64,000 nucleotides of DNA from Selaginella moellendorffii (lineage: Eukaryota > Plantae > Lycopodiophyta): NCBI RefSeq assembly GCF_000143415.4, contig NW_003314325.1, forward strand, positions 962,086 to 1,026,085. Reading direction: 5' to 3'. The notes under the pieces are model-generated. The model worked only from the letters and a program-made list of their open reading frames with translations. It had not been told where the DNA came from and made no database searches. Shown here piece by piece: positions 2,076 to 27,777 of this stretch (positions are counted from its first letter, which is position 1; the number at the start of each line of letters is the position of its first letter). The position numbers and the translations under genes were made by a program.

Positions 2076-4394
2076 CACAGCTTCTATATCGTGAGGGGCT
2101 TAGATGTTTATCTCTAGCATTTGTATCTTCTATATGTATATCTTCAATGACACCCTATTCCATGCAAGTTGTTGTTCATCTCCTAGAGCTTTTGACTTGT
2201 CATTGTTGGCATCATAGCCTAAATGCCTAGTAGGGCATTTGCTGAATGGCAGCCTAATGCCATAAATCGAAAAACGATGCAAGTGCCAAAACTCATTTGC
2301 CACACCCAAAAGGCCCTGAGTTTCTATCCAATACGTATTTTTGAAACCACTTCTACAACTTCTACAAACTGTTCTCACCCCATGTATCACACCATTTCAA
2401 CAAGAGGAAATGTTGGATATGGAAACTCGTTGGGCTCACTCAAGGGATCTGCCAAATTCTTGCAAACAAACTACAAATCAAATTTCCTATCTCCATGGAA
2501 AGTTTAGGATTTTTTTATCCATGGAAGAGAAGCTTATATGGAGTGGCCAGCAAGCACCCTCTCACTGGTGTCAAGGGAAGAGCATCTAATCAACTTCATA
2601 GGCTTCATAACACTACTGCCGTTGTCAAAAGCCCACCTAGTGGTTGTGGATACACTTGCTGTCTCCAAGATGTCATAGTGTAACCATAATTGTGCAAGAA
2701 TTCATAAACATTATATCATAAGTACACATCTAATTTTATCAACATACTAAATATTGCAAATCTTGTTTTCCTTTTGCCTTTTTGTCTTTATATCTCAACC
2801 TCCTCCACCCAAAAAGTTTAGTAGCAAGTGTGTGGATTTGCAAGGTTTTCTCTAGATTTGATCTTCAAGCTTCAGCCCAAAGTGTTATCCCACACCCAAG
2901 TTTCAAATTAGCATAATCAGTACTTTGTTGGAGGCTACAACATTTTTGTGGTTCTTCACTCTTCTTGAACCTCTACTTGTCCAAGGACAACATGACTACT
3001 TATTTTGATGATATTGATTGGGTTTGTTCTGCCATAATCAAGATCTATTGTTTGATATATGGAACCTAGTCTGCCTTCACCTATGTCATGGAATTCCATC
3101 TTCTTGTATTGGACATTGTGGTCATGAATAAATTCTCAATGATAGTGTTTGTGTTGGCCTGTAGGAGGATGTTAAGGATTTTCTTATCACTATGGATGAT
3201 CCTGTGGATCTTCAGAATACTGTCAACAAAGTTGTGCATGTGGACAAATTGACTCTTATGGTGTTAAGAAAGTTATCAACCACTACCTACATCTAGTTTG
3301 CTTGTACTTGCACCTACATGCTCTCCTATACCTACTAGACTTGTGCCTATGATGACATTTCACAATTTAGTCCCCTCTTGTATGTGGAACATCAGCATCA
3401 ATGGTTTGTGGTTATATTGTGGATCCATGTCTCTATCAAAACTAATAGGCAAAGAACACAAGACTATAATGAAAGACAAGAGAAAGTTAGCAAGAAAACA
3501 CAAGAAGATCAGCCCAAGACTAGTGTTGATTCAATTCAAAGGTTTATATAAGTCTAAATTTTGCTATCACAACCATTAAAAATAGTGTGTGCCATTTGAT
3601 TAACACAACCTGCAAATAAGTGAGTCTAGAACCTGTGGTTAGGACCCACTTGACTTGTCAACATATAGCTTGGCCTACCACCTAAGCCCAGCCTATCAAC
3701 CGTCTAAGCCAGAGCATGAGGCAGTGCCTAAGACTAAGCCTGAGCCACAATCCCTGGTCTTATCAAGGTTTTATTTCATCATCATTTACAAGCCTAGGAA
3801 GTAGTTAGTATATTACATGTATTATCTTAATGTTCCTATTTGGCTCTAAAGCTTGGTAAATCTACATTTGACTAGTAGAATCAAGTTCTTCTTAGTTTTA
3901 AATGACTTCAAGTTATTATCAAGAATCCTAGCTATGGCCTATCTCAGCCTCAAGAAAGTTCAAGATATTATTCTCATGGTCAAACTCACATTCAGCCTCA
4001 AGCATTAGTTATGATAGGATGTTTTGGACTTAGTTATACATAGAGTGTGCTTACTATAATTATCGAAAGTGGTGGCTGATCTATTTCTCAAATTTTAAAA
4101 GAAACACTATTTCTCAAATTAAATAAATATCTCCAAACAATGATAAATGCATAAATTATTATATTTTTTGTATGCTTTTTATTGTTTGGAACTGTATCTT
4201 CAATAATACAGTTTAAATAAAAAAGAATGAAAAAAACTAAATTAGTATTTGCATCATCTTAAATCATGTGAAACTTATATACAAGATAATAAAAAAAAAA
4301 CTTAATTGATTTTAAGCAATATTGATGTATAGTAAGAAAAACTTAAAGCAAGAATTGACTATAATGTTAATTATATTACCTGAATGTTCAAAAA

Positions 4395-5500
4395 AGTTCA
4401 TAGTGTCACATTTTACAAAAAATACATCCTACTACTCAAATACCATTTAGCCATTATTGACAAAAAAATGACTAATGGAGTCAATCACTCAATTTCACCT
4501 AATTTACAAAAAATGATCCCACAAGTGAGAAGCCAAAAGCATTAACCCTCATGAGCAACAAACCAAACTTGTTAGTAAGGTTTAAATAAACTATTGTCAA
4601 TAAGTAATTAAAATTGTTTATATGGTCATGCCTTTTAACATAAATTAAGAATATCAGGAGTTGCATGTGACCAGTCAATAGTAGTTACATTATGATTAGA
4701 GATATCATTATACACATAAAGTTTTGAAGCCACTTTAACTATATTGGCCCAAACTTGAAGATGAATATGATGGATTATATCAAAATCATAGATAAAGATT
4801 TTTTAAAGACAATGATTTATTGGTTAATAAATATTAAATTAGAACACTAAAGTATTCCAAATAAGTTATCACCTGGAAAACACAAAGTATAAAAACCATT
4901 AGAATCAAGCTTGAACTACCAAATATCAAAGATAAAATGCTAAACAATTTATAAAAAAAACTAGAAAGACACAAAATATTATTACTCAATAATAAAAATG
5001 CTTTCTAATGTATTGTCCAAAGAAAATAACATCCCAATTTATCATAACCAACCTTAGTAATAATTAACATATTATAATGAATGTCTAAGGGCTAACCTCA
5101 TTCATGTTAACTATCATATTAGACAATTTAAATAAATCTAAATCAATAATACTAATTAATTAAAGTTGTTAAACTAAGTGTTAGCAATATTTTATTAGTA
5201 TCTCAAACCAAAAAGATCAATTCAAATCAAACCACAAAGGATATGTGTCAAGACAAAAAGGTAAAAGTCATTAAAGAAAATAACTAACTATAATGAAGAT
5301 TATCAATCATCCCATTAATAGATATGTACAATTATTGTTGAAGAATAATCCACCATTCCAAAGAATGATAAATCTTCTATTATTAACAATTATTAAAACC
5401 TCTAATAACAATAGCCCGACCCCCAACCTAAAGAGTTTTTGCTTGCTTTTCCTTACAAGAGAATACAACCCAATCAACTACTATTAACAAACATTATGGC
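4395..5500 (-). mobile_element. Decayed internal region of family A LTR element
   Basis: Collinear with 44055-45250 and 55230-56420 (e.g. TTGGCCCAAAC..AAGAT, TATTCCAAATAAGTTATCA, TATCAATCATCCCATTAAT). Confidence 0.75.
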
Positions 5501-6059
5501 AAACAAGGATGCGAAGGGTTTTGGGATACTCAAAAGGATCAAGTTTCAAACTAGATTGTTTATAAGCCATCTTTAGGTGGTGTATAACTCATAATATAGT
5601 ATATATTCTATACTAGGTTGTGATTTAAACATTCTCTAAGCATTTATAGAAAATAATATATTGAATTCAATACACATATGAGATTTTAAAACTCATATGA
5701 GTATATTTATTTAGCAACCTTCTAGTGCTATAGATTTAGGAGTGTAAGTGTTTTTTATAATGAACTTTCCTTCATAAAAATGGCCTCCTATAATTTGAGG
5801 ATAATGGATAACACACAAAGCTATCCACACACAATCTAACAAACTAAATGTTGCTAATCATAGTCAAAAAGTAATGGAGATCATGATAGTAAACTTCAGT
5901 AGTGAGAGGGGGAACACTTTAAAAAACCAAAACCCTAACTCACTCTCTAGCTAATTGTGCAAGAGTTAAGAAAGTTATGACCCAATTGCATAGCACTAGT
6001 GAGAAAATCACAAGTTCACACTCTCTCTATGTATTGAATATTGTCATCATAAATTCTTA

Positions 6060-6337
6060 GAACCTTGGGCATCCATAAGTATTCTTTTAAAGTAATTGAT
6101 AGATTCAGTGAAGGATAAAGGTATCTACTATGGGACTATAGTACAGGAAAGATTAATAGATTTAATATGAAAATGGAGGTTAATTGGCTTAGTAAAGGTT
6201 ATTAGTAAATAGTTCATAAGGAAGGAGGGTGCATATAACATATGTGATCACAGAATGAGAATTGGATATATTGTCAGTGTAGATCCTTAAAACCCCTTTT
6301 TAGTTGGTTTAAGAGGAGAGAGATAGAGTGTGCTACA
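6060..6337 (+). mobile_element. Decayed family D TRIM fragment
   Basis: Matches 46200-46586 (GGGACTATAGTAC, GATTCAGTG, TGTGATCA, GAGAGATA..GTGCTACA). Confidence 0.6.
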
Positions 6338-6339
6338 TA

Positions 6340-7135
6340 TGTTAACACATACATATAAGCTTAAATATAAATTTATGCAAATGGTATATCTCAATCCATT
6401 TTATAAGCCCAAATGAAAACTTATACAATCTAATATGAAAAAGTAACCAAGCCCAAGCACAAATTTGTGCAAATGATACATTTCAATCTACCTTATGAGC
6501 CCAAGTGAAAGCTCATACAATCTAATATAAAAAAGTAACCAAAATCCATACTTAAAGGACTATAACAATTAAATATACACCCACTATCCTTATTATACAT
6601 TTGTACATTTAGAACCCCCCACAGCACCCTCTAACCCCCCACCCCTTGACCCCAAATCCTAGAAGTTAGTCTCTAAGACAATCACAAAAACTTATTAAGT
6701 ATAGAATGATGCTAGATTGCAAATTTGAGAGCGGGAATAACACCTTCATGTTTAGAACAATCTCTAAATTCTCTAAATCTGCTCAATTAGTAAATCTAAA
6801 CACTTTTTATAAATAGCTAATAGGACCAAATGAAACCAACATATAGGGGAATGATAGCAAGAGTGTCTTAGCAAACATAATAAACTATCATATAGTGAGT
6901 ATTGATGGACTAATTTTAATATTGCAGTGGATTTTGTCAAGCCAGTGCAAGATAGAGCCAAAAAGAACTAATGAACCAGGTCAAATACAAATGTTAAATC
7001 ATGTTTATTAACACTTGAATAAAAGGGATTGAAAAAGGGTCCAATAGTATCAACTTTTTGCTATTGTGGCAATAAGGAAAGAATATCTAAAAAGACTCCT
7101 AATAGTAACTTTTGATACCTGCAATCATGTAACAT
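6340..7135 (-). mobile_element. Decayed family A PBS-side internal region plus LTR, with ~85-bp tandem duplication at 6370-6542
   Basis: Matches 61040-61190 and 54520-55140. The unit AATTTATGCAAATGGTA...AAAAAGTAACCAA occurs twice. Confidence 0.6.
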
Positions 7136-8455
7136 TCTATCACTTAAGATATCACCTAAATATAAAGCTCTAAAATCTATAAATTGCAACTAAATACTTA
7201 GCAATACATTATGATTATGTAAAGGAATCAAAAGAAAAATAAAAAAATCAATGAGAAAGTATACATATGCAATTGAAGCTCTAGATATAATTGTGGCATT
7301 TAGGTTATGATATAGAGATTTAAAGAGAACTAAAAGAAATCAATGCTATAAAGAGGAAGGCAACTATAAAAAAGCTTTACCCTTTTCTTAAAGAAATTAA
7401 TAATGTGCTTAGAATATTTTTAGCTCTAATGAGGGATTACACATAATTTTTAGTGTGATTTAGAGTGTTTTTGAGAGCATTGATTATAGTTCACAATTGG
7501 CCACTAGCAACAGGGCATCCATGAGCAATCCTATGAAGGATAAATTGATTTTACACCATCTTTCTGTCCAAAAAATTAAAAAAACTTAAAGAAGTCAAAT
7601 TTGGTGGAATATTTAAAGTTTTAGCTAAGCTATTGCATAGAACTTGAAACTCCTATGGGACCACTAACCTATAAAATATAGTTGTTGACAACTATGATAA
7701 ACCTAAAGCTATAGCATTCAATTGATGAATGAATTGTGATTTTATATACAATTGTTAATTGCTTAAACTAACTTTGAAACTGTAACTCTAAACTAAAACA
7801 AGGGACTTCGAGGGCAAACTTAATCTCCTAAATATCACTGCAGTAAATGATAAATTCCACTTTTATGTTTACCTTTCAATTAGCCTCTATAAACTCACAA
7901 AAACTTATTTTATGTCTTCTTTTTAGTCAACTTTCAAGACCTATATTAACTCACACAACTTTTATTTTGTTTAGCATTGCATATAAAAAGTCAAAATTAC
8001 TCCATTCATCCTCTTTATACCTTTTTATCCCCTCCTCAAAAATAAAAACGTTTTGAAGTGTTAATTCCATTTGGACTCATTATACTCATTTTCATTTTCA
8101 TTTATATTCATCATCACTCTTATTATATTTGTTTAAATTCATTACATTCATCTCACTTCACAATTTATATCATCAATTCTTGGTCTAGTACTGTATTTGC
8201 TGAAAAACAAAGTTTGAAGTGTTGCGCCAAAAAAGAGAATATATGAAAAATTAATTATAGAAGAAAAAAAGTAGATAAAATGTCATTAGAAAAGGAATTT
8301 TTAGCAATTGTCAAGATGAAAATAAAAAAATAAAAAGAAAGAAATGTGAATTCCTTTACATGCACTCTTAACAAGTTGTGAAATTGAGAATAAAGATTAG
8401 ATCCTGCTCAATTACTTATATTTCTACTTCTCAACTGAAGTGTCTTTTTTTATTG

Positions 8456-11065
8456 TTATTGTGCTGTGATGTCTCTGGCCTTGGCCGGCTCCATCAGCTT
8501 TTGCGCATCCTCAACCCTGCCGAGCTTGATCAAGCTCTCGGAAAGGATCCTAAACGTCTCCGGGTTTGGCACCGCGCCGCTCTTCCTCGTCGCCTCAAAC
8601 ACCGCATAAGCCTGGTCGATGTTTCCCGTCTTGCAAAGCCCTCCAACGAAGCTCACGCAGCTCACGGGATCCAGCAAGAACTTCTTCTCCCTCATCTGCT
8701 TGTAAACCTCCAGAGCTTCGTCCAGCTTCGTCGCTCGAGACAGTCCCGCGATGAGGATGCGATACGTGCAAGTATCGGCCGCGAGACCTTTGGTTCCCAT
8801 CTCCGCGACGAGCTCGTTCGCTCGGCCCAGCTTCCCCAGCTTGCAAAACCCGTCGATGAGCGTGTTGAAAGTCACAATCGTTGGCTGCAAGCCTGCGCCG
8901 CCGGACATCTCCCTGTAGAGCTTTTCGGCCTCGTCCATGCTGCCCCTCTTGCAGTAGCCGGCGATGAGCGAGTTGTAGGCCACCGCGTCCGGGGGAATGC
9001 ACGCTTGAGTCATCTTCTCGAAGAGCTCCCTGGCTTGGATCACCTTCTCGGCCCGGCAAAGCCCCGCGATGAGAGTCGTGTAAGTGTACTTGTTTGGCTT
9101 GCATCCGGCCTCGAGCATGCTGCCGAAGACTTCCAAGGCCTTCTCCAGTTCCCCCGTCCGGCACAGCCCGTGGATGAGCGTGCTGAAAGTGATCACGTTT
9201 GGGACGTAGCCAGCAGCTCGCATCGCCTCGAAGAGCTTGCAGCCTTCTTCCACCCTTCTGGCTTTGCATACCGCGTCGAGCAGCGTGTTGTAAGTCACCA
9301 CGTCCGGNNNNNNNNNNNNNNNNNNNNNNNNNNNNNNNNNNNNNNNNNNNNNNNNNNNNNNNNNNNNNNNNNNNNNNNNNNNNNNNNNNNNNNNNNNNNN
9401 NNNNNNNACGGGGACGTTTGGTTGGCAGCCGTGCTTGGGCATCTGCTTGAAGCGTTCCGAGGCATCTTTCACCTTCCCCGCTTGGCAGAGGCCGAGTATA
9501 AGCTCGTAGAACATAAGTCTGTCCGGGTGGTGGCCGCCTCGAATCATCTCGTCGAACAGGCTGCTTGCGTGGTCGACTCTCCGTGCCTTGGCTAGCGCTC
9601 GAACGAGGCTCGAGTACGCCTGCATGGACGGCGTCTGTCCTCTCATCACCATCTCGGACAGGATCTTCAAGGACTCGTCAAGCTTGCCGATCTTTGCGAG
9701 GCCGTGGATGAGAATGTGGTACGAGACGTTGTCCGGCTTGTATCCGCTTTCCACCATATGTTGGTATACTTCTCTCGCCTTCTCCATGTTGTTGGACCTC
9801 GCAAAGCCTTGCATGACGCCGTTGAAGGCAAACACGTCGGGGTTACACCCGGCTGCCATCATCTCTTCCAAAACTTTGTAGCTCTCCTCGGGCTTTGCCT
9901 CCTTCACCAGGCTCTTGATGATGGAGCTGTAAGTAAAGACGTTGGCCGCGATGTTCTTGTCTCTCATCTCGGACAAAAGCTTCCTGGCTCCTTCGGTGTT
10001 CCCCGAGCTGCAAAGCCCGGATATGAGAGTGTTGTAAGTCCATCTATCCGGCTCCACTCTCTTCTCGCGTTTCATACTCTGGAACAGATCGAGAGCCTTT
10101 CCAAACTCACCAGCGTTGCAGCGGCTGTTGATGAGGACGTTGTAAGTCACGAGTGACGGTACGCAAGACTCGCTCTTCATCGTCTCGAAGACTTCCAGTG
10201 CCTGTGCCAGCATCCCCGCTTTAGCCAAGCTTTGCACGACGAAGTCATAAGCGTCACCACCTATAGCACACTTGGCCTTGCTCATTCTTTTCAAGATCTC
10301 GTAGACGCGAACTCCCTTTCCGGCTTTCCCAAACGCTGCAACGACGGCAGACCAAGTCTTGGACTCCACGGCCACCTTTTGGGATCCCAGGCAGTCTAGC
10401 ACGCTCTCGATCTCTGCGAGACGCTCCTCCGGCTTCGCTGCGAGGAGCTGGATCAAACTCTCCAGCGTCGTCGAGGATCGAGGAGCAAAGTTGGATGCTA
10501 CCATCGTCTTGAACGCGTCCAAGGCCTTGTCCGTGGAGTTCGTCGCGACGAGAATCTCGAGAAGAACGTTGTGGACGTCCTTCTCAGCCATGAAACCATT
10601 CTTTGCCGCGATCATGGCCTCGCAAGCCGGTATCAAAAGCTTGGATCGACCATCTCTCACCAAGCTGTGAAGAACGAGCTTGAAAGTTTCCTCGTCCACG
10701 TCCAAGAAGCCCGGGCCGCGCTGCTGGATCTGCTGAACGAGCTGGTTCACGACTCTCTTCTGGGCATCGAGGGAGACGCTGGAATGAGAGTAACCGCGCT
10801 GGCCTTCCACCCAGCTCAAGAACTTGAGCGCTACTCGGCGATCTTTGATGGATTTCACGACCTCCACGGCATGCTGGGGCTCTACAAGGCCAGCATTTAG
10901 ACCCTCGAGCCTCTTCGCCGTGTCGGGCGTCCATCCCCCACTGAGAACGCGGCCGATCGTCTCAACCACGTCGATCTTCTTGGAAATCTTGGCCCTTGTG
11001 CTCGCGAATCGCGACTGGAAATTCCTGGAGCTGCTACTTACCTGATTGTAGCACGAGCGTAACAT
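8456..11065 (-). CDS. P-class pentatricopeptide repeat protein, likely organelle-targeted; interrupted by an assembly gap
   Basis: Tandem 35-aa repeats (PDxxTYNTLIxGLC...A..L..EM). R/S-rich N-terminus resembles a mitochondrial presequence. Confidence 0.95.
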   Translation of the reverse strand: MLRSCYNQVSSSSRNFQSRFASTRAKISKKIDVVETIGRVLSGGWTPDTAKRLEGLNAGLVEPQHAVEVVKSIKDRRVALKFLSWVEGQRGYSHSSVSLDAQKRVVNQLVQQIQQRGPGFLDVDEETFKLVLHSLVRDGRSKLLIPACEAMIAAKNGFMAEKDVHNVLLEILVATNSTDKALDAFKTMVASNFAPRSSTTLESLIQLLAAKPEERLAEIESVLDCLGSQKVAVESKTWSAVVAAFGKAGKGVRVYEILKRMSKAKCAIGGDAYDFVVQSLAKAGMLAQALEVFETMKSESCVPSLVTYNVLINSRCNAGEFGKALDLFQSMKREKRVEPDRWTYNTLISGLCSSGNTEGARKLLSEMRDKNIAANVFTYSSIIKSLVKEAKPEESYKVLEEMMAAGCNPDVFAFNGVMQGFARSNNMEKAREVYQHMVESGYKPDNVSYHILIHGLAKIGKLDESLKILSEMVMRGQTPSMQAYSSLVRALAKARRVDHASSLFDEMIRGGHHPDRLMFYELILGLCQAGKVKDASERFKQMPKHGCQPNVPXXXXXXXXXXXXXXXXXXXXXXXXXXXXXXXXXXPDVVTYNTLLDAVCKARRVEEGCKLFEAMRAAGYVPNVITFSTLIHGLCRTGELEKALEVFGSMLEAGCKPNKYTYTTLIAGLCRAEKVIQARELFEKMTQACIPPDAVAYNSLIAGYCKRGSMDEAEKLYREMSGGAGLQPTIVTFNTLIDGFCKLGKLGRANELVAEMGTKGLAADTCTYRILIAGLSRATKLDEALEVYKQMREKKFLLDPVSCVSFVGGLCKTGNIDQAYAVFEATRKSGAVPNPETFRILSESLIKLGRVEDAQKLMEPAKARDITAQ
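9308..9407. other. Assembly gap (100 N)
   Basis: Run of 100 N inside the PPR ORF. Confidence 1.
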
Positions 11066-11167
11066 CGCTCGCCATCGTCATCGCGGCCTCATCTCTCTAC
11101 CCTAGCAAAACTAAATTCGTAGGGTTCTTCGCGACCATGAGCTGGGCACTTCTTCAAGAAATCTGTG

Positions 11168-13336
11168 ATGCCTGTCCAAATTCCATCCAAGAGAGCCCCT
11201 TCACACGATGATCTAGCTCGCCTTCTCCAATCGTGCACGGATCTTGAGCGCGCGAAGCGTATCCACAGCCGGATTCACGACTCGATCGCTCACGGGAGTG
11301 GCATCATTCTCGCAAATCTCTGCGTTGCCATGTACGCGCGATGTGGCAGCATTGTCGATGCTAGAGCTACATTCGATTCCATCAAGAACCCTAATGTTTT
11401 CTCCTGGAACATTATCCTTGCAGCATATGCCCGGGCAGGGCATCTGGATCAAGCCCAGCGTTTATTCCATGCTATGCCCTTTTGGCAGCGTGACGTGGTA
11501 ACATGGACGACCATGATTGCTGCGTACGCTCAGAACCAACGGCTCGATGAGGCCCAAGCTCTCTTTCTCTCCACTCCCGAGCACAACGCTGTCTCCTGGA
11601 ATGCTATGATCCAAGCATATGCTGCTTGCGGATATCTTTCCAAAGCAAAAGCTTGCTTTAATACTATGCCGGCTACTGATATTGTTTCCTGGAATATACT
11701 TTTATCTGCTTACGCCGAAAGCATGTTACTCGAGGAAGTAACTTTACTTTTTAACTCAATGCCTCAATGGGATCTTGTGTCCTGGAATACGTTCCTTGCA
11801 GCAAATGCCCATTCTGGGCATCTGTATTATGCAAAGCGCATATTCGATGAGATGCCCGAGCATGGCTCTTGCTCGCGCAGCGTCATGATCTACGCCTACG
11901 TTCACGCTGGATCCGTAGAGGACGCCACGAAAAACGTACCTCTCGGGGAAGACGATGTGGCATCTGGCAACGCGATTATCAGTGGGTGGTCACAGGCGGG
12001 AGATGTCCAACGAGCAAAGCTGGCGTTCGATTCCATGGGCCGCCGGGACCTAGTGACGTGGAATGCCCTCCTCGCCACGTACGCACACAATGGGATGTTA
12101 GTAGCAGCGGCTGCTACGCTGGACAAGATGCCCGAGAGTGACGTGGTGACGTGGATCACCATGATCTCTGCCTACTCACACCACGGCCACGTAGAGGAAG
12201 CCGAGAGGGTGTTCGCATCAGCACCTGGCGGTAACATGATGACGTGGAATGCCATGCTGTCGGCGTATGCCCACAACGGGTGTGCCGCGTCAGCGGAGTC
12301 CTTGTTCCGTACGATGCCACGTCGGGACAGAGTGTCGTGCAATACGATGATCGCTACGTTTTCACAGGCGGGAAAGCTGGGAAAATCCGAGGAGGTGTTC
12401 TTTCAGCTCTTGCCGAACGAGGAGAAAGGGATTACTTCTTGGAACGCGATGATCGAGGCATATGCCCGTAATGGCCATCTTGGAGACGCTCGAAAGCTCT
12501 TGGAGCTCATGCCCGAGTGGAACGCGGTAACCTGGACGACAATGCTTGGGGTTTTTGCCGATGCTGGCCTTGTAGAAGACGCAAAGTCCTTGTTTGATCT
12601 AGCACCAGAGAAGGATTGCGTGTGCTGCAATGCTATGATCCAAGCGTTTGTTGTAACTGGGCTCTTGGAAGAAGCGGAAGCAATGGTTTCGAGTCTTCCT
12701 TATGCCACCATATATGTTTGGTCAACGATGGTGGGAGCTTATGCAAACAGTGTAAAACTCCAGGAAGCCGAGGCTATGTTCTTTGCTATGCCAGAACGGA
12801 ATGTTACGTGCTGGAACGTTTTGATAACAGCATATGCCACGAATGGGCAATTAGAAACATCGAGAAATGTCTTTGATCGCATGCCAGAGAGAGACGTAGT
12901 TTCATGGTCGACGTTAGTCTCCTCGTTTGCTCACGGAGGACATCACCGCGAAGACTCCATGGGTATCTTCCGGGATATGGAATTGGAGGGCGATTGCGCT
13001 CCAGATGCCATATTCTTCTTGAGCATATTGAATGCTTCTAGGCAGCAGGGATTAGTGGATCAAGCATCACATTTTTTCACGTTGATGAGTGCCGAGCATG
13101 GGATTTTGCCATGGCAAGAACACTACAATGCGATGGTGGACACTTTGGGACGAGCGGGGAGAATAGCAGCAGCGGAAGAGCTCATAAACAACATGCCATT
13201 TGAGTCCCAAGTGGCTACGTGGGGATCGCTCCTCACATCTTGCAAGCGTTTTAGTGACAGATCCAAGAGGGCATCTTTGGCTTCCAAGAATATACTTGAA
13301 ATGGATCCCACAAATTGTGCCCCGTACCTTTTATAG
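11168..13336 (+). CDS. PLS-class PPR protein with E-like C-terminus and no DYW domain (RNA-editing factor type)
   Basis: Runs of 31-aa S-type motifs (MPERDVVSWxxMIxAY). C-terminal EHYNAMVDTLGRAG..AEELINNMPF...TWGSLLTSC. First ATG at 11168. Confidence 0.93.
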   Translation: MPVQIPSKRAPSHDDLARLLQSCTDLERAKRIHSRIHDSIAHGSGIILANLCVAMYARCGSIVDARATFDSIKNPNVFSWNIILAAYARAGHLDQAQRLFHAMPFWQRDVVTWTTMIAAYAQNQRLDEAQALFLSTPEHNAVSWNAMIQAYAACGYLSKAKACFNTMPATDIVSWNILLSAYAESMLLEEVTLLFNSMPQWDLVSWNTFLAANAHSGHLYYAKRIFDEMPEHGSCSRSVMIYAYVHAGSVEDATKNVPLGEDDVASGNAIISGWSQAGDVQRAKLAFDSMGRRDLVTWNALLATYAHNGMLVAAAATLDKMPESDVVTWITMISAYSHHGHVEEAERVFASAPGGNMMTWNAMLSAYAHNGCAASAESLFRTMPRRDRVSCNTMIATFSQAGKLGKSEEVFFQLLPNEEKGITSWNAMIEAYARNGHLGDARKLLELMPEWNAVTWTTMLGVFADAGLVEDAKSLFDLAPEKDCVCCNAMIQAFVVTGLLEEAEAMVSSLPYATIYVWSTMVGAYANSVKLQEAEAMFFAMPERNVTCWNVLITAYATNGQLETSRNVFDRMPERDVVSWSTLVSSFAHGGHHREDSMGIFRDMELEGDCAPDAIFFLSILNASRQQGLVDQASHFFTLMSAEHGILPWQEHYNAMVDTLGRAGRIAAAEELINNMPFESQVATWGSLLTSCKRFSDRSKRASLASKNILEMDPTNCAPYLL

Positions 13337-16443: not shown

Positions 16444-17811
16444 ATGGAGAGAGCAGAGGCTGCGAGGAAACGGCGGCGCGTAGCCGGGTATGATACAGGG
16501 GAATCCTGGCAGCAGATCAAGGCGCTAAATTGCAAGGATCTGGTCAAGCCCAACCAGGTGACCATTGTTCCTTACATGGACGCTCGTAATCGAGGCTCTT
16601 TTCTTTTCGTGGGGTCACCGGACATGGATGAATTGCTGTGGCACTGCCTGTCTCTCGAACCCGGGCAAGAGCTTGTTGTTGTCGGTCCCAAGGGCACCGG
16701 CAAAAGCTGCCGGTTAAGGGCAATGGCTGCCGCGCTCTATGCGCGTGGCCCGGAGAAGAGTGTGATCGTTTGCGTGTGGAACTTGGAGAGTGCCAGCTCG
16801 CCGGCTGTGTTGCTGCGACGGCTGCTTGATGGGCTACGCTTTGCATACTCGGGCGCGGACGAGCACAAGCCGGTTCTCGAGGCTCTCGAGGCTCTTTGGA
16901 GGATGGGCGTGAGCGTAGCGAGGCTTCAAGAGTTTCTCAGGGAGAGGGCAGCCGCTGGTGACGATTTTACATTCGTTGCTGACGGTGCCGAGGCTCTGGA
17001 TACTCGCGATTACAGTGGCACCAAAAAAGTGGGCTCTAAGGAGCTGAAAGATACCTTGTTGACGCTCGAAGCCATCGTTTCTCCCTACAAAATCGTGTGG
17101 GGCGCGTCCCCGGAAGCGCGCCAGGCAGAGGCCGCCGACTCGGAGCGAGTAGCGATCTATTGTGTCGGAGGTTTTACCAAGGTTTGGTCGTTTCTATACT
17201 TCTCGTGCTCGCCAACTAAATCCCGGCTGCAGGAACAAAGGGAAGTCTTTCTTCTTCACTCCGTGCTGGGAGCCGTCGTAGCTGGTGATGTGCAGCGGAC
17301 CAAGGACATGGATTTCTTCGCTGGTTTCCATCCCCAGTTTCTGGATGAGCTGGATGGGGCTTGCATGGAGATAGCTCGGATCAAGCAGGCAGGCGGACGC
17401 AAATCAAGGCTTTTGTGGGGGGACACCGTGAGACTTGCTCCACCGGTTGAGCTGGAGCCACATGAAGTCTCTTTACTTTTGAAAGACGAGGAAGATTGGC
17501 AGAGGGTGCTCCTGGAGTTTATCAACGGACGAACAATGTCTTTCGTCCGCAGATCAGTCCAGCAAGTCGTGCGAATGTTGGACAATGCAGAAGCTATATG
17601 CAACTTCCACGGGAAAGCGCAAACGATCGATAAGGATCCAAGGTACTCTGTATCAGAGCACGAGTTCTGCTCGTGTTTCGTGGAGCAGATCTACATGGAG
17701 GAGTTTCGAAAGGCCCAAAGCTGTCCTCAGCAGGAGCATGCAGCATGGTGGAATATATTAAGAGGTAATGACTGGCAAGCAAGACTAAAAGGCAAGAACT
17801 CCAGTGCATGA
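16444..17811 (+). CDS. P-loop NTPase, Crinkler-associated NTPase-like; probable in-frame intron 17182-17232
   Basis: Walker A LVVVGPKGTGKS and Walker B-like FTFVADG. Later motifs WGAS, GGFT, AGFHPQFL and DPRY follow the order remembered for fungal CRN-type NTPases. Splice sites AAG|GTTTGG ... CTGCAG|GAA. Confidence 0.65.
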   Translation: MERAEAARKRRRVAGYDTGESWQQIKALNCKDLVKPNQVTIVPYMDARNRGSFLFVGSPDMDELLWHCLSLEPGQELVVVGPKGTGKSCRLRAMAAALYARGPEKSVIVCVWNLESASSPAVLLRRLLDGLRFAYSGADEHKPVLEALEALWRMGVSVARLQEFLRERAAAGDDFTFVADGAEALDTRDYSGTKKVGSKELKDTLLTLEAIVSPYKIVWGASPEARQAEAADSERVAIYCVGGFTKVWSFLYFSCSPTKSRLQEQREVFLLHSVLGAVVAGDVQRTKDMDFFAGFHPQFLDELDGACMEIARIKQAGGRKSRLLWGDTVRLAPPVELEPHEVSLLLKDEEDWQRVLLEFINGRTMSFVRRSVQQVVRMLDNAEAICNFHGKAQTIDKDPRYSVSEHEFCSCFVEQIYMEEFRKAQSCPQQEHAAWWNILRGNDWQARLKGKNSSA

Positions 17812-17959
17812 TGGAGGAACGCATTCGCTAGCAGAGCTTTTCAAGCTTGCTGCCAACTTTGGTATTTTGGAATAAATAAATCTTAAATACTCAATTATGC
17901 TATAGAGGAGCTCTCAGAGTGCAATAATATAATGAAACAAGAACCCGAATTTGAACAAT

Positions 17960-18400
17960 ATATAAACACTTTATATATTTGTATTATTTTTGTAAATTAT
18001 ATTTGAAGCTTAAGGATTAAATATGTGAAACTCCATTTGACTTTGAAACCAAATTTGAAGTAATTTAAATAGCAAAAAGTTATTAAGATTTATGTGGTAA
18101 AAACTTGGAAAAATATTTAGTGATTATTCGGAATCAAATGGTGGAAATTTTAAAAGAATGGATGGAATATTACTTACTATTGCTAACATAAAATATGTGT
18201 AAAAACTTAAAAATTAAGTTTATGTTTATAAAGGATAAGTCATTATGAATCCTCATAACATCTTAAAACTCAATAAAAAAATTTTAAGTTTATGGAGAAA
18301 ATACACTAATCATTATGTTTTTATATATCTTAGCATAGCAATAACATACTTTCAAAATATTATATGTTAAGTTGAAAATAAATTTTTTTATTAGTGCATT
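17960..18400 (+). repeat. AT-rich direct repeat, copy 2
   Basis: Similar to 13790-14500; left arm of the hairpin is deleted. Confidence 0.75.
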
Positions 18401-18549
18401 ATAAATTTCAAGAGCATTTATGATAAAAAAAATATTTTTTAAATGCTACTTAGCATTCTTATTATCATTTATTAAAATTAAAAATGTGAAGTCTAAGTAT
18501 ACAGCATCGTAGCCGTACATTTCTGTATTTCATTTCCATATTCCAATAG

Positions 18550-18558
18550 AAACCCTAA
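18550..18558 (+). promoter_or_regulatory. Telo-box-like AAACCCTAA upstream of the CbiA-like gene
   Basis: AAACCCTAA lies ~25 nt upstream of the ATG at 18580. Confidence 0.35.
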
Positions 18559-18579
18559 AACTTGGAGTGTGAGAATGCG

Positions 18580-21500
18580 ATGAGGGCGATCGTTGTGGCG
18601 GGGACATGCAGCGGGGCGGGCAAGAGCAGCATCGCGCTCGGCCTCATGGCGGCCTACACGCGCCGCGGCCTTCGCGTCCATCCATTCAAGATTGGCCCCG
18701 GTGAGTGATAAATGCTCTTGAGCTCTAAGATTCCTACCTCCTCCGCGCTCTAGATTTCTCGGATCCAATGCATCACAAGGCCGCGACGGGGCACGATTCT
18801 TACAATCTGGATAGCTGGATGATGAGCAGGCGAGTGAAAATCCCAAGAACTCTTCGCGAATTTTGATATCCCTTTGTATTCTCCAGAGAGGCGAACCAAG
18901 CGTGCTTCATTCGATGCGCTCCAGCTACTGACGTTGCAATCGTGGAAGGAGTCTTTGGAATGTTTGATGGCCGCGATGGGAAATCCGAGGCCGGAAGCAC
19001 TGCCGAAATGGCCAAGATTTTGGGAGCTCCGGTTCTTCTCGTGCTTGATACCAGAGGATTTGCTCGAAGTGCCGCAGCTTTGATTCGAGGATACACCGCT
19101 TTCGATCCAGAAGTCACCTTTGCTGGAATTATCTTCAACAAGGTTTGCTACTAAGTTTTCTCGTTCCTAGTTTATCTTTTTTCTTGTTTTCTTCTATGTA
19201 GCTGGAGAGCTCCGCTCACAAGGCTTGGCTTATGGAAGCTGTGTCTGCCATCGATTCAAGCGTTAAAGTTCTCGGTGGCATTCCTATCGTAGACGGCTTG
19301 CATTTGGCTGAGAATCAGTTCTACCCGAGCCTGAGTGGTGAAGAAGCAGTACCGGCGAGCTACATTCAAGTTTTTGCCGATTTGATTGAGCATCACGTCG
19401 ACTTGGATGGTCTGTTAGAGGCTGCCGGTGTGTGGAAGCCAAAGGGTGGCCCGAACTTTTACTTGGAAAACATCCGTTCAGCGCTGCCTTATGCCAAAGT
19501 CCGCATCGGAGTCGCGAGGGATGCTGCCTTTTGCCTCTATTACCAGGAGAATCTCTCGTTGCTTCAAGGTAATTATTTCGTTTTTCTCTCTTAAGTTGCG
19601 GATTTCTTGTCCTTCTGACAGACGCCGGAGCAGAAATAGTTTTCTTTTCACCTTTGAAGGACTCCCTCCCGACGAGACTGGATGCTATTATCTTTGGAGG
19701 TGGCTATTTGAAGCATCACTTGGAGAAGCTATCTCTGAACAAGAAACTCCTCTACGCGGTGCGAGCATTCGCTGATGCCGGAGGAATTATCTATGGAGAA
19801 GCTGGAGGCGCTATGTACTTGTCACAAGGCATCGAGGTATGGTGTCCAAATGTTAGTTCTTGCGTGGTGCAGAATGACGTTGTCCTTGCAGACAGACAAG
19901 CACCAGCCGTTCACTATGTGCGGCGTTTTTCCTTTTTGGACACGAATGAAATTAGGAGCGACAACAAAAGAATATGTCAAGGTTTGTTTGGTTTTCATTA
20001 TTTGCTTCTTCGTTCGACATTATCAAGAATAAACAGGCAACAACACAAGAAAGTTGCGTATTGTTTCCTCCTCATATTGGCGAAATTCGCGGATACATGT
20101 TAAACTGTAGCGAGGTCTTTTGGCTGCAGGCAGATGGTATAAACATCTGTCCGAGAGGGTACGCCAGTTTATTTGTTTGTTTATTGTCATTTTGATTTTG
20201 TGAATTGCGACAGGTTCGTGTTGAAGTATGAAACCTCAGAAAAGATGGAAGAAGTAGAAGGCTACATGCAAGGAAATGCAATGGCTACGTTTGCGCGGCT
20301 TCATTTCGGCAGCAACCCGGCTATAGTTCACGCTCTCATAGAGCGCTGCAGGTTTGCTCATTCGCCTTTTGCTCCTAACTTCTGACTTATGGCTGAAAAA
20401 TCTTCCAGAATGGATTCGTCCAAAGCTGCTGCCGTTGCCGCTGCTTCTGCTTCTGCAGTAGCGCATGCCGGCCCAGCAGCAGCAGCGGCCGCTGGCTCGG
20501 CTGCAGCAAGAGCTGTGACAGCGGCCCTCGGAGAATCGAGGGAGATGTCCCCTTCCCGTATGGAACGCACAAAGTTTCACGGCAAGCTATCTAGTGGTGA
20601 GTGGAGTGAGCGCGGAAGAGATCCGTTTAGGAGACATACAAGGTCTCTCAGTTCAAGTCCTGTTTACACACGCCTTACTATCGACGAGGAGTGTCCCGAC
20701 ATCGAAGTTGACATCAAAGAGACGACTGAGGATGGCTCTTCTGCCAGGATTGCAAGGTCTAAATCCGAGGTTTGGGATGCTCGCGGACAGGATGCTTTGT
20801 CCCCACAAGATCTTACAGAGGCTGTCACGTCGATGGATGATCAGTTCATAAGTGAGGAGGGTCGAGCAGCTGGGCGACAGTGTTTAGTGACGACGACAAG
20901 AAGAATGGACCCGAATCAAGGCATTTATGTGCCTTTCAACGTGAAAGTGATACCACACAAGATCGTGTCGCTCTTTCCAGTGGCTACGGAGATCCTTCTT
21001 AAGCTTGGTAAAGTTTCCTTGTATTTCTAGTAAAGTTGTACTGTGACACACGCTTTTAGTTTCTGGCAGGGGCTGGACACCGTTTGCTTGGGGTGACCGA
21101 TGCGTGTGATAAGCCGGCTGGAGTCAGAATGGGACGACATATTGTAAGTGTCGTGTTTTGCGCTTGAAAGGTTTTTTTACTATGTTCATGAAAACGTATA
21201 TTGCAGGTGTGTCGCAACCAGCAGCGATCCAGCATTGGGAAGGAGAATGAGTTGTCGTACAAACTCGATCTCCCATGGCTTTCGAAGACCAAGCCTCATT
21301 TAATTATCACTCAGGTTAGAAAATTTCTTTTGAGAATGTCATAACGTGAGGCTTTTGTTCATGCAGAAAGTGTGCTCTCTGTGCTACATGGATAGCAAAG
21401 ACGTGACTGAAGAGATTACCAGAGCAGGCCTCCAAGATACGAGGCTGTTCGTTGTAAATCCACACACGGTACGAGGAAATCTAGCTCTCCATAAGTCGGT

Positions 21501-22165
21501 GCTGATTTTCACTCCTTAGTTATCTGATATCTGGGCGTTCATCATGGATCTTGCGGACATGCTGGGTTTGTACAAGGAAGCCTGCCAACTTATAAACTCC
21601 CTCCGACTCCGCTTGAGAAGAATCGCTGCTAGTGTGGCTGTCCATCACCAGCCGAGACTGCTTCTCCTTCAAGGCCTCGATCCGCTTACTCTCGGGGGCC
21701 GATGGATTGCGGAGATGGAAATCCTGTCCGGTGCCTACGACGGCTTGCAAAAACCAGGCTGTGCGTCTGAGAGGCTACACTGGCAACGTATCACATCCTA
21801 CGCTCCCGAGTTTATTATTCTGGCTCCTTGTTCCACATCCGTCGAGCAGACATTGTCCGAGGTACTTGTTTACGATTCCCCATATCTTTGTCTGCTGATT
21901 TTCGTGCTTCCAGGTGCACAAGCTCGCCAGACAGCCGGGGTTTTGGTCCGTGCCGGCGGTGGAGTCTCGACAAGTCTACATTTGCGACGGATCATACTTC
22001 AGCCAACCCGGTTTGAGGGTGGTGGAGGGAATGGAGCTTGTGGCTCACATCCTCCACCCATCTACAGTCTCGGCTCCATCTGCCAGTGGAGTGCTGAAGC
22101 TTTCGCTCAAGCCGGGGCAAAAATGCCGTCCAGAGGAGCTCTACAGGCACTTTTTAGTCGAGTGA
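18580..22165 (+). CDS. Multi-exon fusion: cobyrinate a,c-diamide synthase-like (CbiA/CobB P-loop + GATase_3) - Ala/Ser-rich linker - BtuF/cobalamin-Fe-chelate periplasmic-binding-protein-like domain
   Basis: Spliced translation: MRAIVVAGTCSGAGKSSIALGLMAAYTRRGLRVHPFKIGPDFSDPMHH..SYNLDSWMM..IVEGVFGMFDG..GSTAEMAKILGAPVLLVLD..GIIFNK..RIGVARDAAFCLYYQENLSLL..GAEIVFFSPL..GGGY..YGEAGGAMYL..LHFGSNP, then KIVSLFPVATEILLKLGAGHRLLGVTDACDKP..KPHLIITQKVC..GGRWIAEM..APEFIILAPC..W SVPAVESRQVYICDGSYFSQPGLRVVEGMELVAHILHP. Introns include 18701-18753, 18830-18886 (GC-AG), 19143-19201, 19569-19621, 19837-19891, 19982-20036, 20352-20408 and 21008-21069. Confidence 0.88.
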
Positions 22166-23389: not shown

Positions 23390-25230
23390 ATGAGTCGATC
23401 GAATAGGAGGGTCTACCCACCGGGAAAGCTTCCACTCCAACACCCTCTGTTCGTGGAAGAGGACCCCCCAAACGACGAGAAATCGAGGTGGGCGACTGCG
23501 CCTCCCAACAGCGGCGGATTTGAGAGCCCTGTGATCGCCGTCCCTTTCAAATGGGAGCTCGAGCCAGGTGTTCCCAAACAAAAGCTCGATCGCCAAGAAC
23601 ACCAGCATCGCTGGAGGAGAGACGAGGAGCTGTTGGCGAAGAAGAGCCCACCACCACCAACTGCTGACCGGGCGACGGTGGTCGAAAAGGATCTCCAACA
23701 GAGTGATCATCCCGGGAGCGCCTCCCCGTCGCCATCGCCATCGCCATCTTCCTCCTCCTCCTCCTCCTCCTCTCTTGCTCCACCCCCGCGATTGATGGTG
23801 ATAAGCAGCAGCACTGGTAGAAAAGCTGGGCCGGCGCTCAGCTCTCCTCGCTCTCCCAGATCCATTTCCCTGTCCCGCAAGATGAAAAGCTTGCTCCAGG
23901 GGAAGCTGGCATCGCCCAGGAAGATCTTCTCGGAGCAGCAGCAGCAGCAGCGCTCGAGCCTGTGGGAGTGTGAATCCGGAAAGGTAGTCCAGGAGTTGGA
24001 TCGTCGCGTCGAGGAAGAACTGGTGGACCGCCGGTGCTGCGTTTCGAGGTGTTGCTCCAGCAACGATATAGTCTTCGAGGGAGAGCTTCTCGATCTTCAT
24101 CACCATCCGAAGCATCCACCACCACCAGCGCCGGCGGGATCGATGCCTTTCAAGAACATGTCCAGCATGCTCCTCGAGCTCTGGTATGGCGGTGGAGGAT
24201 CCAGCTCCGAGTTCCCGAGAAGTCCTGTCCCTGGCTTTTTCCGTGACGAGTTTCCACTCCAGAGCTCCGGTGGCTCTAGCACTGCGAGTAGTAGCGAGTT
24301 TCCAATCCAGAGCTCTGGTTCTAGCACTGCGACTAGTAGCAAGAGCATTGCCTCGCCCGTGACAAGCTCGTCCTCTTCTTCCAGCGACCTGGAGAGCCCC
24401 GGCAGCAGCACGGACAACTCGCTCGGTAGCTTCTCCAGCAGTGACTCCTCCTCTCACCACCATCAAATCTTGCACGTCCCCCGCCACGACCACGAGTTTC
24501 AGACGAGCTTTGATTCCTGCGACGAAGTCAAGCTCTTCGGTTACGCCTCGGACGACGACGAGTACGGCGGTGGCTTCGACTTCGCTGCCGCCGCCAGCCG
24601 CGAGTTCTTCGCCAAAAACTTCTACTACCACTCGGACAGGTTCCGCGTCGAGTCGTGCGACTCTCCCTCGCTGCTCGGCGTCAAGCAGCTCGCTCGCTCG
24701 GCAGTGCCAGTGCCACCGCTCCCCAGCGCTCTCAAGTCGGGGAAGAACTCCAAGAAGTGCTTGAAGAAGGTGAGGTTCGCCTGTGTCGAGGAAGAAGTCG
24801 AGCCGGAGAAGGCCGAGGATGGTCCGGAAGTTGACGAGGAAGAGGACGATGAACTCGTGGTTGCTTCGCCATCGCCGACGAGTCCTGCTCTGTCCCGTTT
24901 CTCGTCGAGGCCAGCGTCGCGGTTCTGTAGCATCGAGGAGGACGACGATGGCGGCTTCTACCGGGACTCAGACGAGCTCTCCTCCGAGCCGTGCAGTCCT
25001 TCGCCTCGTTGTGCCAGAAGAGATCCATCTCAACTCTTGCTGCGGATCATCCAAGCCGATGCCGAGTCCAGCCGGAAGAACAAAGGCGCTCTTAAGGTAC
25101 GATCTTCTCCATAACGAATTTTCTTTTGTTTCTTTCGTCTGGTTTCTTCGGTTCGTTCTCTAAGTTGAAAGGTGACGGCTCGTTTTTTGTTTGTGCGCAG
25201 TCTATGTTTGGTTCACGTTCGCGCTGGTAA
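23390..25230 (+). CDS. Ser/acidic low-complexity plant protein with DUF688-like VPFxWExxPG motif; probable last intron 25097-25200
   Basis: 574-codon ORF with AVPFKWELEPGVPK. Splice AAG|GTACGA ... GCGCAG|TCT gives a C-terminus SMFGSRSRW*. Confidence 0.75.

Positions 25231-25442: not shown

Positions 25443-27777
<2,335 letters not shown>

Follow-up and report, generated by a model that had tools for sequence, protein, structure and literature searches.

Structure of the LOC9648553 gene

The window analysed here, a stretch of 64,000 nucleotides of Selaginella moellendorffii DNA, carries the gene LOC9648553, whose features are listed in Table 1. A gene model assembled by hand from GT/GC-AG sites comprises 14 exons and 13 introns of 51–63 nt, and its spliced product of 953 residues is identical to XP_024545628.1 (hereafter P0154), isoform X1 of LOC9648553. 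The RefSeq name of this protein is "uncharacterized protein". An earlier note, made from the DNA letters alone, had proposed that a complete module of CobB/CbiA type and a domain of the class III binding-protein type are joined in one spliced land-plant gene; this is confirmed. Every motif quoted there is present, the junction intron lies where it had been placed and is phase-consistent, and the introns are indeed short, their number being 13 instead of about 12. Shorter products are also annotated: the exon 13 segment omitted in isoform X2 encodes 19 residues (LSDIW...GLYK; comparison of P0153 and P0001), and 760-residue isoforms end just past exon 12 (comparison of P0154 and P0151).

Because an in-frame TAA lies 27 nt upstream of the first ATG and streptophyte orthologues begin at the same Met, the protein has neither a transit nor a signal peptide, as the note had read, and its sequence predicts a cytosolic location. 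Plant PPR genes flank the locus, which is present as two haplotypes; it is therefore nuclear, as had been claimed, and not bacterial contamination. ORFs derived from transcripts of a fern, Chloropicon and Diacronema likewise encode one continuous protein of this kind across the position of the intron 8 junction.

Table 1. Position in the window of LOC9648553 and of the features of its product (aa, residues of P0154).
Feature	Position	Strand	Basis
Whole coding region of LOC9648553, ATG to TGA	18580..22165	+	Hand-built model identical to RefSeq P0154
Exons 1–7	18580-18700, 18754-18829, 18887-19142, 19202-19568, 19622-19836, 19892-19981, 20037-20158	+	
Exons 8–14	20214-20351, 20409-21007, 21070-21143, 21207-21314, 21367-21468, 21520-21861, 21914-22165	+	
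Intron 2, GC-AG donor	18830..18886	+	Sole junction yielding ...MMSREANQ..., shared with RefSeq protein and orthologues
Intron 8, joins CobB module to remainder of protein	20352..20408	+	Phase-consistent; unspliced frame stops after 12 codons
First 57 nt of exon 13	21520..21576	+	Missing from RefSeq isoform X2 at the second haplotype
CobB synthetase (P-loop ATPase) half, aa 1–245	18580..19483	+	Pfam CbiA, AAA_26; NF002204 and TIGR00379 above cut-off; motif alignment
P-loop GTCSGAGKS	18601-18627	+	Motif alignment
GPDFSDP, across intron 1	18694-18767	+	Motif alignment
EGVFGMFDG	18945-18971	+	Motif alignment
GATase_3 glutaminase-type half, aa 252–450	19502..20316	+	Pfam GATase_3, 76.5 bits; alignment columns
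Ala334 at nucleophile position (Cys in other sequences)	19801-19803	+	Alignment columns
GYMLNCSE where bacteria have GHEFHYSE; Asn398 at second His	within 20088-20114	+	Alignment
Ala-rich element, aa 467–502, two predicted helices	20422..20529	+	Near-identical in Marchantia, Physcomitrium and Diphasiastrum; pLDDT 77–90
Disordered low-complexity linker, aa 504–641	20533..20946	+	pLDDT 25–35
Class III binding-protein (Peripla_BP_2) domain, aa 645–953	20956..22162	+	Pfam; AF2; Foldseek; PDB profile search; Cys table
Predicted cleft cysteines C674, C725, C728, C860	21105-21107, 21373-21375, 21382-21384, 21829-21831	+	Cys conservation table
His918	22055-22057	+	
Cys941, tail cysteine specific to eukaryotes	22124-22126	+	

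The CobB module

The HMM search of the spliced protein suggested in the note, for CbiA, GATase_3 and Peripla_BP_2, matched all three Pfam families. It was run on the protein of the second haplotype, P0153, which differs from P0154 by 13 residues, and placed CbiA at 4–185 (56 bits) and GATase_3 at 252–450 (76.5 bits). With the NCBIfam models, P0154:1–480 scored 377 bits against the CobB equivalog NF002204 (cut-off 254) and 344 bits against TIGR00379 (cut-off 261.4). Ordinary cobyrinate a,c-diamide synthases of bacteria align with 98% of the module at 42–49% identity. A PDB sequence search with the CobB half did not find a solved relative. Like bacterial CobB/CbiA, the protein is collinear over the full length of the enzyme, with the P-loop, GPDxxDP, EGxxGxxDG and GATase_3 in order, and in the alignment its GTCSGAGKS, GPDFSDP and EGVFGMFDG line up with the bacterial motifs. 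The roles of the P-loop and of the acidic ATP/substrate motif residues were reportedly worked out by mutagenesis of CbiA. Unlike the bacterial enzymes, it is eukaryotic, encoded with introns and fused to a binding domain, its glutaminase Cys and His are replaced, and its host is not known to possess the remainder of the corrin pathway.

The catalytic Cys (ECGG) and His (GHEFH) of the glutaminase are not found in the Selaginella sequence, where the alignment places Ala334 and Asn398. Most orthologues (Marchantia, mosses, algae, an oomycete and a dinoflagellate) retain all catalytic motifs, the glutaminase Cys and His included. The catalytic Cys was lost repeatedly, in lycophytes, ferns, Riccia and Ostreobium. 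Judged from these alignments, the glutaminase site of Selaginella appears dead (Cys to Ala and, at the likely catalytic His, Asn), with the ATP/substrate motifs retained. With such a site, the protein would have to use free ammonia or to serve as an ATP-dependent binder or chaperone.

What had been described as an Ala/Ser linker behind this module does connect the two halves, but consists of two parts. The first is an element conserved across land plants, with helices predicted at 467–478 and 484–502; the second is a disordered stretch of about 138 residues whose length and sequence differ among orthologues and whose dN/dS between the haplotypes is about 1.3. A transmembrane nature of the Ala-rich element was considered and ruled out, its maximum 19-residue hydropathy being about 1.2.

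The binding-protein domain

The C-terminal half matches periplasmic binding proteins, a point on which the note had let its reading depend: Peripla_BP_2 (PF01497) was found at 647–897 of P0153 with 30.1 bits (cut-off 27.5; orthologues reach 54 bits), the AF2 pLDDT of the domain is 93.8, and the Foldseek probability is 1.00 to many class III binding proteins. The whole domain was required for this, single exons of the C-terminal half giving weak or no matches in Pfam and the PDB. The top structural and profile matches are the tetrapyrrole binders ShuT, RhuT, PhuT, BhuT and BtuF, together with 4m7o.

The proposal of a BtuF-like corrinoid-binding domain holds as regards the class III fold and fails as regards BtuF itself. 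The domain shares with the B12 binder of BtuCDF the two-lobe fold with its backbone helix (Foldseek E about 1e-12 to 1e-14), and the family profile matches BtuF of V. cholerae and E. coli. In contrast, the BtuF model NF002894 gave no match for Selaginella and 16.7–20.4 bits for algal orthologues (cut-off 234). Haem binders and 4m7o score equally well or better, and the domain is equally close to ShuT, RhuT and PhuT, to an uncharacterised iron-binding protein and to BtuF. The class III fold does not discriminate B12 binders from haem or siderophore binders. Nor is the domain secreted as BtuF is: it has neither signal peptide nor transporter partner and lies inside a protein without targeting peptide, and its prokaryotic relatives are equally signal-less. 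Four cysteines absent from BtuF-type descriptions are all retained in Selaginella, and the fold topology suggests that they group in the cleft. Three of them are lost in liverworts, Diphasiastrum and others; Cys674 is invariant even in proteins lacking the other three. Together with the losses of the catalytic Cys, this suggests that the ancestral chemistry is dispensable in some lineages.

Prokaryotic relatives of the binding domain

The nearest prokaryotic relatives of the domain form an unnamed four-cysteine Peripla_BP_2 family, with members in Chloroflexota, Binatia, Acidobacteriota, Nitrospirota, Thermoplasmata, Bathyarchaeia and others. They are uncharacterised stand-alone proteins of about 300 residues, start at the first beta-strand without a signal peptide, are 26–35% identical to the Selaginella domain and lack the eukaryotic C-terminal tail that bears Cys941. 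C30, QxxCxVC and PC are kept in 30–31 of 31 of them, and the positions equivalent to Selaginella C674 (xxCDxP), Q722, C725, C728, C860 and H918 (LHP) are conserved in 26–31 of the 31. The Selaginella domain has the same signature: no signal peptide, the Cys of xxCDxP, QxxCxxC, PC and LHP.

The gene neighbourhoods of 80 sampled prokaryotic loci, retrieved with a prokaryote-only alignment, were then compared. Cobamide genes adjoin the binding-protein gene at 6 loci; at the other 74 none was recognised nearby. cobB lies within 6 kb at 4 of the 80, where about 0.25 would be expected by a rough estimate (Poisson p about 1e-4). At one locus (L006) cobB is 12 nt from the binding-protein gene, in the order of the fusion; at another (L002) the order is CbiB, aminotransferase, binding protein, CobQ, FecCD, ABC, CobB, and at a third (L043) binding protein, CobU, CobB. 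Clustering of neighbours did not reveal a universal operon around the 80 relatives. The second-largest neighbour "family" proved to be an antisense ORF artefact, and a cluster of ABC ATPases was set aside as generic.

The note had set a cytoplasmic CbiA against a periplasmic BtuF, a union that would be a topological paradox. This paradox dissolves: among prokaryotes the nearest relatives lack a signal peptide and are therefore already cytoplasmic, and some are encoded beside cobB, cobQ or cobU. A periplasmic BtuF moved into the cytosol is thus not what the binding domain represents.

Distribution, phylogeny and selection

The fusion was found in more than 30 eukaryotic proteins, transcript-derived ORFs among them, from liverworts, mosses, lycophytes, ferns, streptophyte and green algae and a haptophyte; copies of an oomycete and a dinoflagellate carry additional Kelch and DUF5522 domains. 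The fusion is thus a novelty neither of Selaginella nor of land plants. No seed-plant homologue was among the matches of the homology searches. Queried with the binding domain by itself, a word-indexed search returned a single match and is uninformative on stand-alone plant homologues. In the CobB-domain tree the eukaryotes form a clade (SH-aLRT 99) whose land-plant groupings agree with accepted relationships, and in the binding-domain tree they form a group (88; land plants 99) to which the four-cysteine prokaryotic family is nearest. Since both halves form one eukaryotic clade, a single fusion event preceded green-algal diversification, and the fusion is old and has been inherited vertically.

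Between the two haplotype copies, divergence is 0.9% in exons versus 1.9% in introns, and the exons contain no indels. dN/dS is 0.30 overall (binomial p 0.003), 0.34 in the CobB half and 0.10 in the binding domain. Purifying selection, whose absence the note had held would count against it, is thus detected. Together, these results show that the S. moellendorffii fusion is a real nuclear gene, vertically inherited, which encodes a 953-residue protein without targeting peptide.

Discussion

The LOC9648553 protein is most likely a cytosolic corrinoid- or isobacteriochlorin-handling protein, whose ligand and activity we infer. The functions that the note had put forward, in handling B12, in sensing or as a chaperone, are candidates in the same sense. 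The explanation that we favour, and to which we give about an even chance, is a vertically inherited fusion in which the binding domain captures the macrocycle and the CobB module processes or holds the a,c-diamide. The macrocycle captured by the binding domain would be of corrinoid type or an isobacteriochlorin closely akin to it, with the invariant Cys674 as candidate axial or metal ligand and the other three cysteines as a possible site for a metal or an Fe-S cluster. The CobB module on its tether would then ATP-activate and amidate the a and c acetate side chains, or receive or hold the a,c-diamide; in Selaginella the protein might draw on free ammonia, or else act in an ATP-dependent manner as binder or chaperone. 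A cysteine as axial ligand to B12 cobalt has a precedent in BtuM (PMC6072759). All known B12-dependent metabolism is reported to have been lost in mosses and vascular plants (PMC11439496), so that a corrinoid role would be one without known downstream user.

We know of no other part of the corrin pathway in plants. In place of an imported corrinoid, the substrate could be an isobacteriochlorin of endogenous origin (precorrin-2, sirohydrochlorin or siroheme), and the product an amidated sirohydrochlorin or siroheme derivative, as made by CfbB, the Ni-sirohydrochlorin a,c-diamide synthase of F430 synthesis. We regard this as unlikely. CfbB is homologous over its full length, has the same two-domain chemistry, and its model comes near to the CobB model in score (328 versus 377 bits); however, at 327.9 bits the Selaginella protein is below the NF033195 cut-off of 560, and CfbB is known as a methanogen enzyme. 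To our knowledge, the other F430 genes are not to be expected in plants. Several fusion-bearing lineages lack known B12 enzymes, all, the oomycete included, are expected to make siroheme, and the binding domain is at least as similar to haem binders as to BtuF. On the other hand, the neighbours recognised beside prokaryotic relatives are cobamide and not sirohaem genes, and plant siroheme synthesis is plastidial, whereas the streptophyte proteins have no transit peptide.

Of similarly low probability, in our estimation, is a non-catalytic pseudoenzyme in Selaginella and perhaps throughout the vascular plants. It would bind, buffer or sense a microbial tetrapyrrole or a metal in the cytosol, or be a relic heading to loss as in seed plants. 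Consistent with this, lycophytes and the full-length fern protein P0201 have both the Cys and the His of the glutaminase replaced, the CobB half has a higher dN/dS than the binding domain, and homology searches did not find a seed-plant homologue. The intact P-loop and acidic ATP/substrate motifs and the full open frame, free of indels in both haplotypes, argue against it, and CobB-type enzymes can in principle use ammonia directly.

It is quite improbable that the four cysteines make the C-terminal domain chiefly a site for a metal or an Fe-S cluster instead of a macrocycle pocket, and so a redox or metal-delivery partner of CobB that would, for example, reduce or metallate the a,c-diamide. 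The four cysteines are invariant in the 31 prokaryotic members, on loops after beta-strands of both lobes, and three tend to disappear jointly in eukaryotes, which suggests one joint site; but Cys674 persists without them, which gives at least one of the cysteines a role of its own. That the locus is two distinct genes, an artefact of annotation or contaminating bacterial DNA can be dismissed almost entirely, for although an ATG directly follows intron 8 (20410) and Chara is annotated with two adjacent genes, the locus carries 13 spliceosomal introns, lies among plant PPR genes and is present as two haplotypes, and the identical architecture recurs in transcript-derived ORFs and more than 30 species, with congruent domain trees.

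The other eukaryotic protein described as BtuF-like in structure and connected with B12 is the algal cobalamin acquisition protein CBA1, which is also widespread among streptophytes without METH (PMC10828217). CBA1 differs in having a signal peptide and being ER- or membrane-associated, and CrCBA1 is devoid of Pfam domains and carries no fused enzyme. A literature search did not find a description of the fusion of CobB with a binding domain: a 2014 transcriptome paper merely lists a "CobB-like" protein in a haptophyte, and the gene is absent from the gene sets surveyed for plant B12 metabolism (PMC11439496).

Land plants except hornworts are regarded as free of B12 metabolism; mosses and Marchantia nonetheless keep an apparently complete CobB-type enzyme fused to a domain of tetrapyrrole-binder type, and in Selaginella the fusion is under purifying selection, with its glutaminase site apparently dead. 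The results also draw attention to a large family of "periplasmic-binding-protein" homologues in prokaryotes that are cytoplasmic, bear four cysteines and are uncharacterised; the genes of some lie beside cobamide genes. The fusion offers a handle on a possible binding or modification of corrinoids, or of compounds resembling sirohaem, by early-diverging plants and numerous algae, and knock-outs are feasible in Physcomitrium or Marchantia. A bolder claim, in which we place little confidence, is that non-seed land plants (liverworts, mosses, lycophytes and ferns) keep a cytosolic machine that binds and processes bacterial corrinoids and that was lost only in seed plants. If true, this would mean an unrecognised corrinoid physiology of plants, including lineages without any known B12-dependent enzyme, which may lie in salvage or repair, detoxification of analogues, microbe sensing or a still-unknown corrinoid-dependent process.

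Gene structure and domain architecture

The gene model, assembled by hand from three-frame translation and GT/GC-AG splice sites, has 14 exons and a CDS of 2862 nt encoding 953 aa. Its introns are short (51–63 nt, with a GC donor in intron 2), as the earlier note had read them, and number 13 rather than about 12. The translated model matches P0154 (XP_024545628.1, "uncharacterized protein LOC9648553 isoform X1", Selaginella moellendorffii) at every residue; the second copy, LOC9659294 (protein P0153), differs from it by 13 residues. An in-frame TAA lies 27 nt 5' of the first ATG. The start Met, directly at the first beta-strand, is common to streptophyte orthologues and therefore no targeting peptide is visible, in agreement with the earlier reading that the protein has no signal or transit peptide. 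Next to it are two PPR genes and an FtsH-like gene, all of a kind usual in plant nuclear genomes.

The predicted CbiA, GATase_3 and Peripla_BP_2 domains were all found by Pfam in P0153 (residues 4-185, 252-450 and 647-897 respectively, the last with 30.1 bits for a cut-off of 27.5). Residues 1-480 of P0154 matched the NCBIfam CobB equivalog NF002204 (377 bits, cut-off 254) and TIGR00379 (344 bits, cut-off 261.4), while the F430-enzyme model CfbB scored 328 bits, under its cut-off of 560. The CobB part shares 42-49% identity over 98% of its length with ordinary cobyrinate a,c-diamide synthases of bacteria (Acidobacteria, cyanobacteria, Thermodesulfobacteriota).

The C-terminal domain was modelled with a mean pLDDT of 93.8. 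Foldseek retrieved class III binding proteins, with 4m7o (a possible iron-binding protein) as top match; the haem binders ShuT, RhuT, PhuT and BhuT came next, ahead of V. cholerae and E. coli BtuF. A family profile run against PDB sequences gave 4m7o (2e-29), V. cholerae BtuF (3e-27) and ShuT (4e-22). Judged by these rankings, the predicted domain does belong to the group of BtuF and the haem binders. The curated BtuF model rejected it (20 bits at most, 234 needed), hence "BtuF-like" holds for the class III fold and not for BtuF proper. The two halves are joined by a linking region, which is not the single Ala/Ser linker first described: in the full-length model, two confidently predicted helices (residues 467-502), whose sequence is almost the same in Marchantia, Physcomitrium and Diphasiastrum, precede a disordered tether (residues 504-641).

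Distribution and phylogeny of the fusion

The same architecture was found in liverworts (Marchantia polymorpha, M. paleacea, Riccia), mosses (Physcomitrium, Ceratodon), a second lycophyte (Diphasiastrum), streptophyte algae (Spirogloea, Chlorokybus, and Mesotaenium with a truncated binding domain), green algae (trebouxiophytes, Tetraselmis, Ostreobium, Chloropicon, Mamiellales) and the haptophyte Diacronema. For ferns, a Pteridium transcript runs from the end of the GATase domain through both linker and binding domain, and a full-length protein groups with Pteridium. The two parts are annotated as adjacent genes in Chara, and the Closterium database entry holds the CobB part only. Several orthologues are transcriptome ORFs and therefore cannot be gene-model artefacts; together with the identity to P0154, they bear out the single spliced frame proposed from the sequence. 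In the oomycete Saprolegnia (P0235) and the dinoflagellate Polarella (P0238), CobB and binding domain are followed by Kelch repeats, forming a propeller, and the Cys-rich DUF5522 (PF17653). Two database proteins (P0053, P0082) carry binding domain, Kelch and DUF5522 with no detectable CobB part. No seed plant was among the top matches of either CobB-based search despite dense angiosperm proteome sampling, suggesting that the fusion is absent from this group.

Maximum-likelihood trees placed the 18 CobB domains from eukaryotes in a single clade (SH-aLRT 99), within which land-plant and Zygnematophyceae groupings agree with accepted relationships; its position among cyanobacterial and acidobacterial enzymes was not resolved. 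The 25 binding domains from eukaryotes likewise fall into one group (support 88; land plants 99). A single eukaryotic group in both trees points to one ancient fusion, vertically inherited. The fusion is real and old.

We found no description of it in the literature searched. A 2014 haptophyte transcriptome paper merely lists a 'CobB-like' protein (PMC4057078), and a plant B12 gene survey does not include the gene (PMC11439496). CBA1, which has a BtuF-like structure, is a different protein, being secreted and membrane-associated (PMC10828217).

Selection and conserved residues

Between the two haplotypes, exons diverge by 0.9% without indels and introns by 1.9% with 25 gap columns. The codon differences (13 non-synonymous, 12 synonymous), small counts from two haplotype copies, give an overall dN/dS of 0.30 (binomial p 0.003 against neutrality), in line with purifying selection. 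By section, and again on small counts, the CobB half has a dN/dS of 0.34, the linker ~1.3 and the binding domain 0.10. Constraint thus seems to act on both folded halves, and most strongly on the binding domain.

In Selaginella, the P-loop, GPDFSDP and EGVFGMFDG motifs are all retained. The glutaminase nucleophile (bacterial AECGG) is Cys in Marchantia, mosses, streptophyte algae, most green algae, the haptophyte, the oomycete and the dinoflagellate; since it is kept across most lineages, the ancestral protein looks like a complete enzyme. Selaginella has Ala at this position, Diphasiastrum and the fern have Ser, and Riccia and Ostreobium have Gly. Lycophytes and the fern have also lost the second His of GHEFH, which we take to be the catalytic one by reference to the related enzyme GatD. 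The glutaminase half has been inactivated several times independently, including in the vascular plants sampled. A purely non-catalytic role, one of the main rival explanations, has to be set against the motifs retained in the CobB module.

Another main rival is a metal or Fe-S site built by the four cysteines of the binding domain, which the general topology of class III folds would group in the cleft. Cys674 is invariant in 56/56 sequences. The remaining three, all present in Selaginella and most algae, tend toward joint loss in liverworts, Diphasiastrum and Ostreobium; mosses and ferns show partial loss.

Prokaryotic relatives of the binding domain

Among prokaryotes, the domain is closest to ~300-aa proteins without signal peptide, whose sequence opens with M-R-I-V-S-L-L-P-S-A-T-E at the first strand. 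The earlier note had opposed a cytoplasmic CbiA to a periplasmic BtuF; given this signal-peptide-less ancestry, the paradox disappears. Four cysteines (in xxCDxP, QxxCxVC and PC) are essentially invariant among these relatives, which also have an LHP motif. This apparently uncharacterised cytoplasmic Peripla_BP_2 family is widespread (Chloroflexota, Binatia, Acidobacteriota, Nitrospirota, Thermoplasmata, Bathyarchaeia).

No universal operon was found among 80 genomic loci. Dedicated cobamide genes occur at 6/80, and cobB lies within 6 kb in 4/80, where ~0.25 would be expected by chance (our own estimate; Poisson p ~1e-4). BtuCD-like transporter genes occur at two further loci. This cobamide-gene neighbourhood is the only evidence here tying the binding domain to corrinoids in particular.

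Positions of features in the window and at loci of prokaryotic relatives
Feature	Position (strand)	Observation
Fusion gene	window 18580-22165 (+)	
PPR-repeat ORFs	window 8456-11065 (-); 11165-13336 (+)	two, long, intronless; divergent, ~100 bp between
FtsH_ext + AAA ORF	window 26410-27732 (-)	probably exon of FtsH-type protease gene
ORFs of 455 and 574 aa	window 16444-17811 (+); 23390-25114 (+)	on either side of fusion gene; Pfam match absent or sub-threshold only (AAA_22, 22.9 bits); in the other haplotype, genes of 411 and at least 583 aa are called there, likewise without Pfam matches
Alternative acceptors, RefSeq isoforms	window 21469-21576	intron 12 and exon 13 start; one isoform drops 19 aa of binding domain, others end at 760 aa
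5' flank	window 17080-18579; L082 (second haplotype) 1501-3000	AT-rich, fast-evolving; 6.4% divergence and 278 gap columns, versus 0.9% in exons
L002	4011-11754	CbiB, aminotransferase, binding protein, CobQ, FecCD, ABC, CobB
L006 (Bathyarchaeia)	4591-6924	cobB and binding-protein gene 12 nt apart, one frame, fusion's order
L043		binding protein, CobU, CobB
L062		CobB near binding-protein gene
L019		CobU near binding-protein gene
L048		CobQ near binding-protein gene
L001 (metagenomic contig)	6368-8939	four-cysteine homologue after D-Glu_cyclase and GLUCM-like_C genes; context unrelated to cobamides

Possible function

B12-dependent metabolism is reported to have been lost in mosses and vascular plants (PMC11439496), which weighs against a corrinoid role, as does a binding-domain fold that suits haem-like ligands too. 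Endogenous sirohydrochlorin or siroheme as the substrate is the remaining main rival, to be weighed against the cobamide genes near the prokaryotic relatives. From the sequence, the fusion is most likely a cytosolic protein handling a corrinoid-type macrocycle, which would be captured by the binding domain. The tethered CobB module would activate the a and c acetates of the macrocycle with ATP and amidate them, or else retain the product. The Selaginella protein would need ammonia as its nitrogen source, or may act as a binder.
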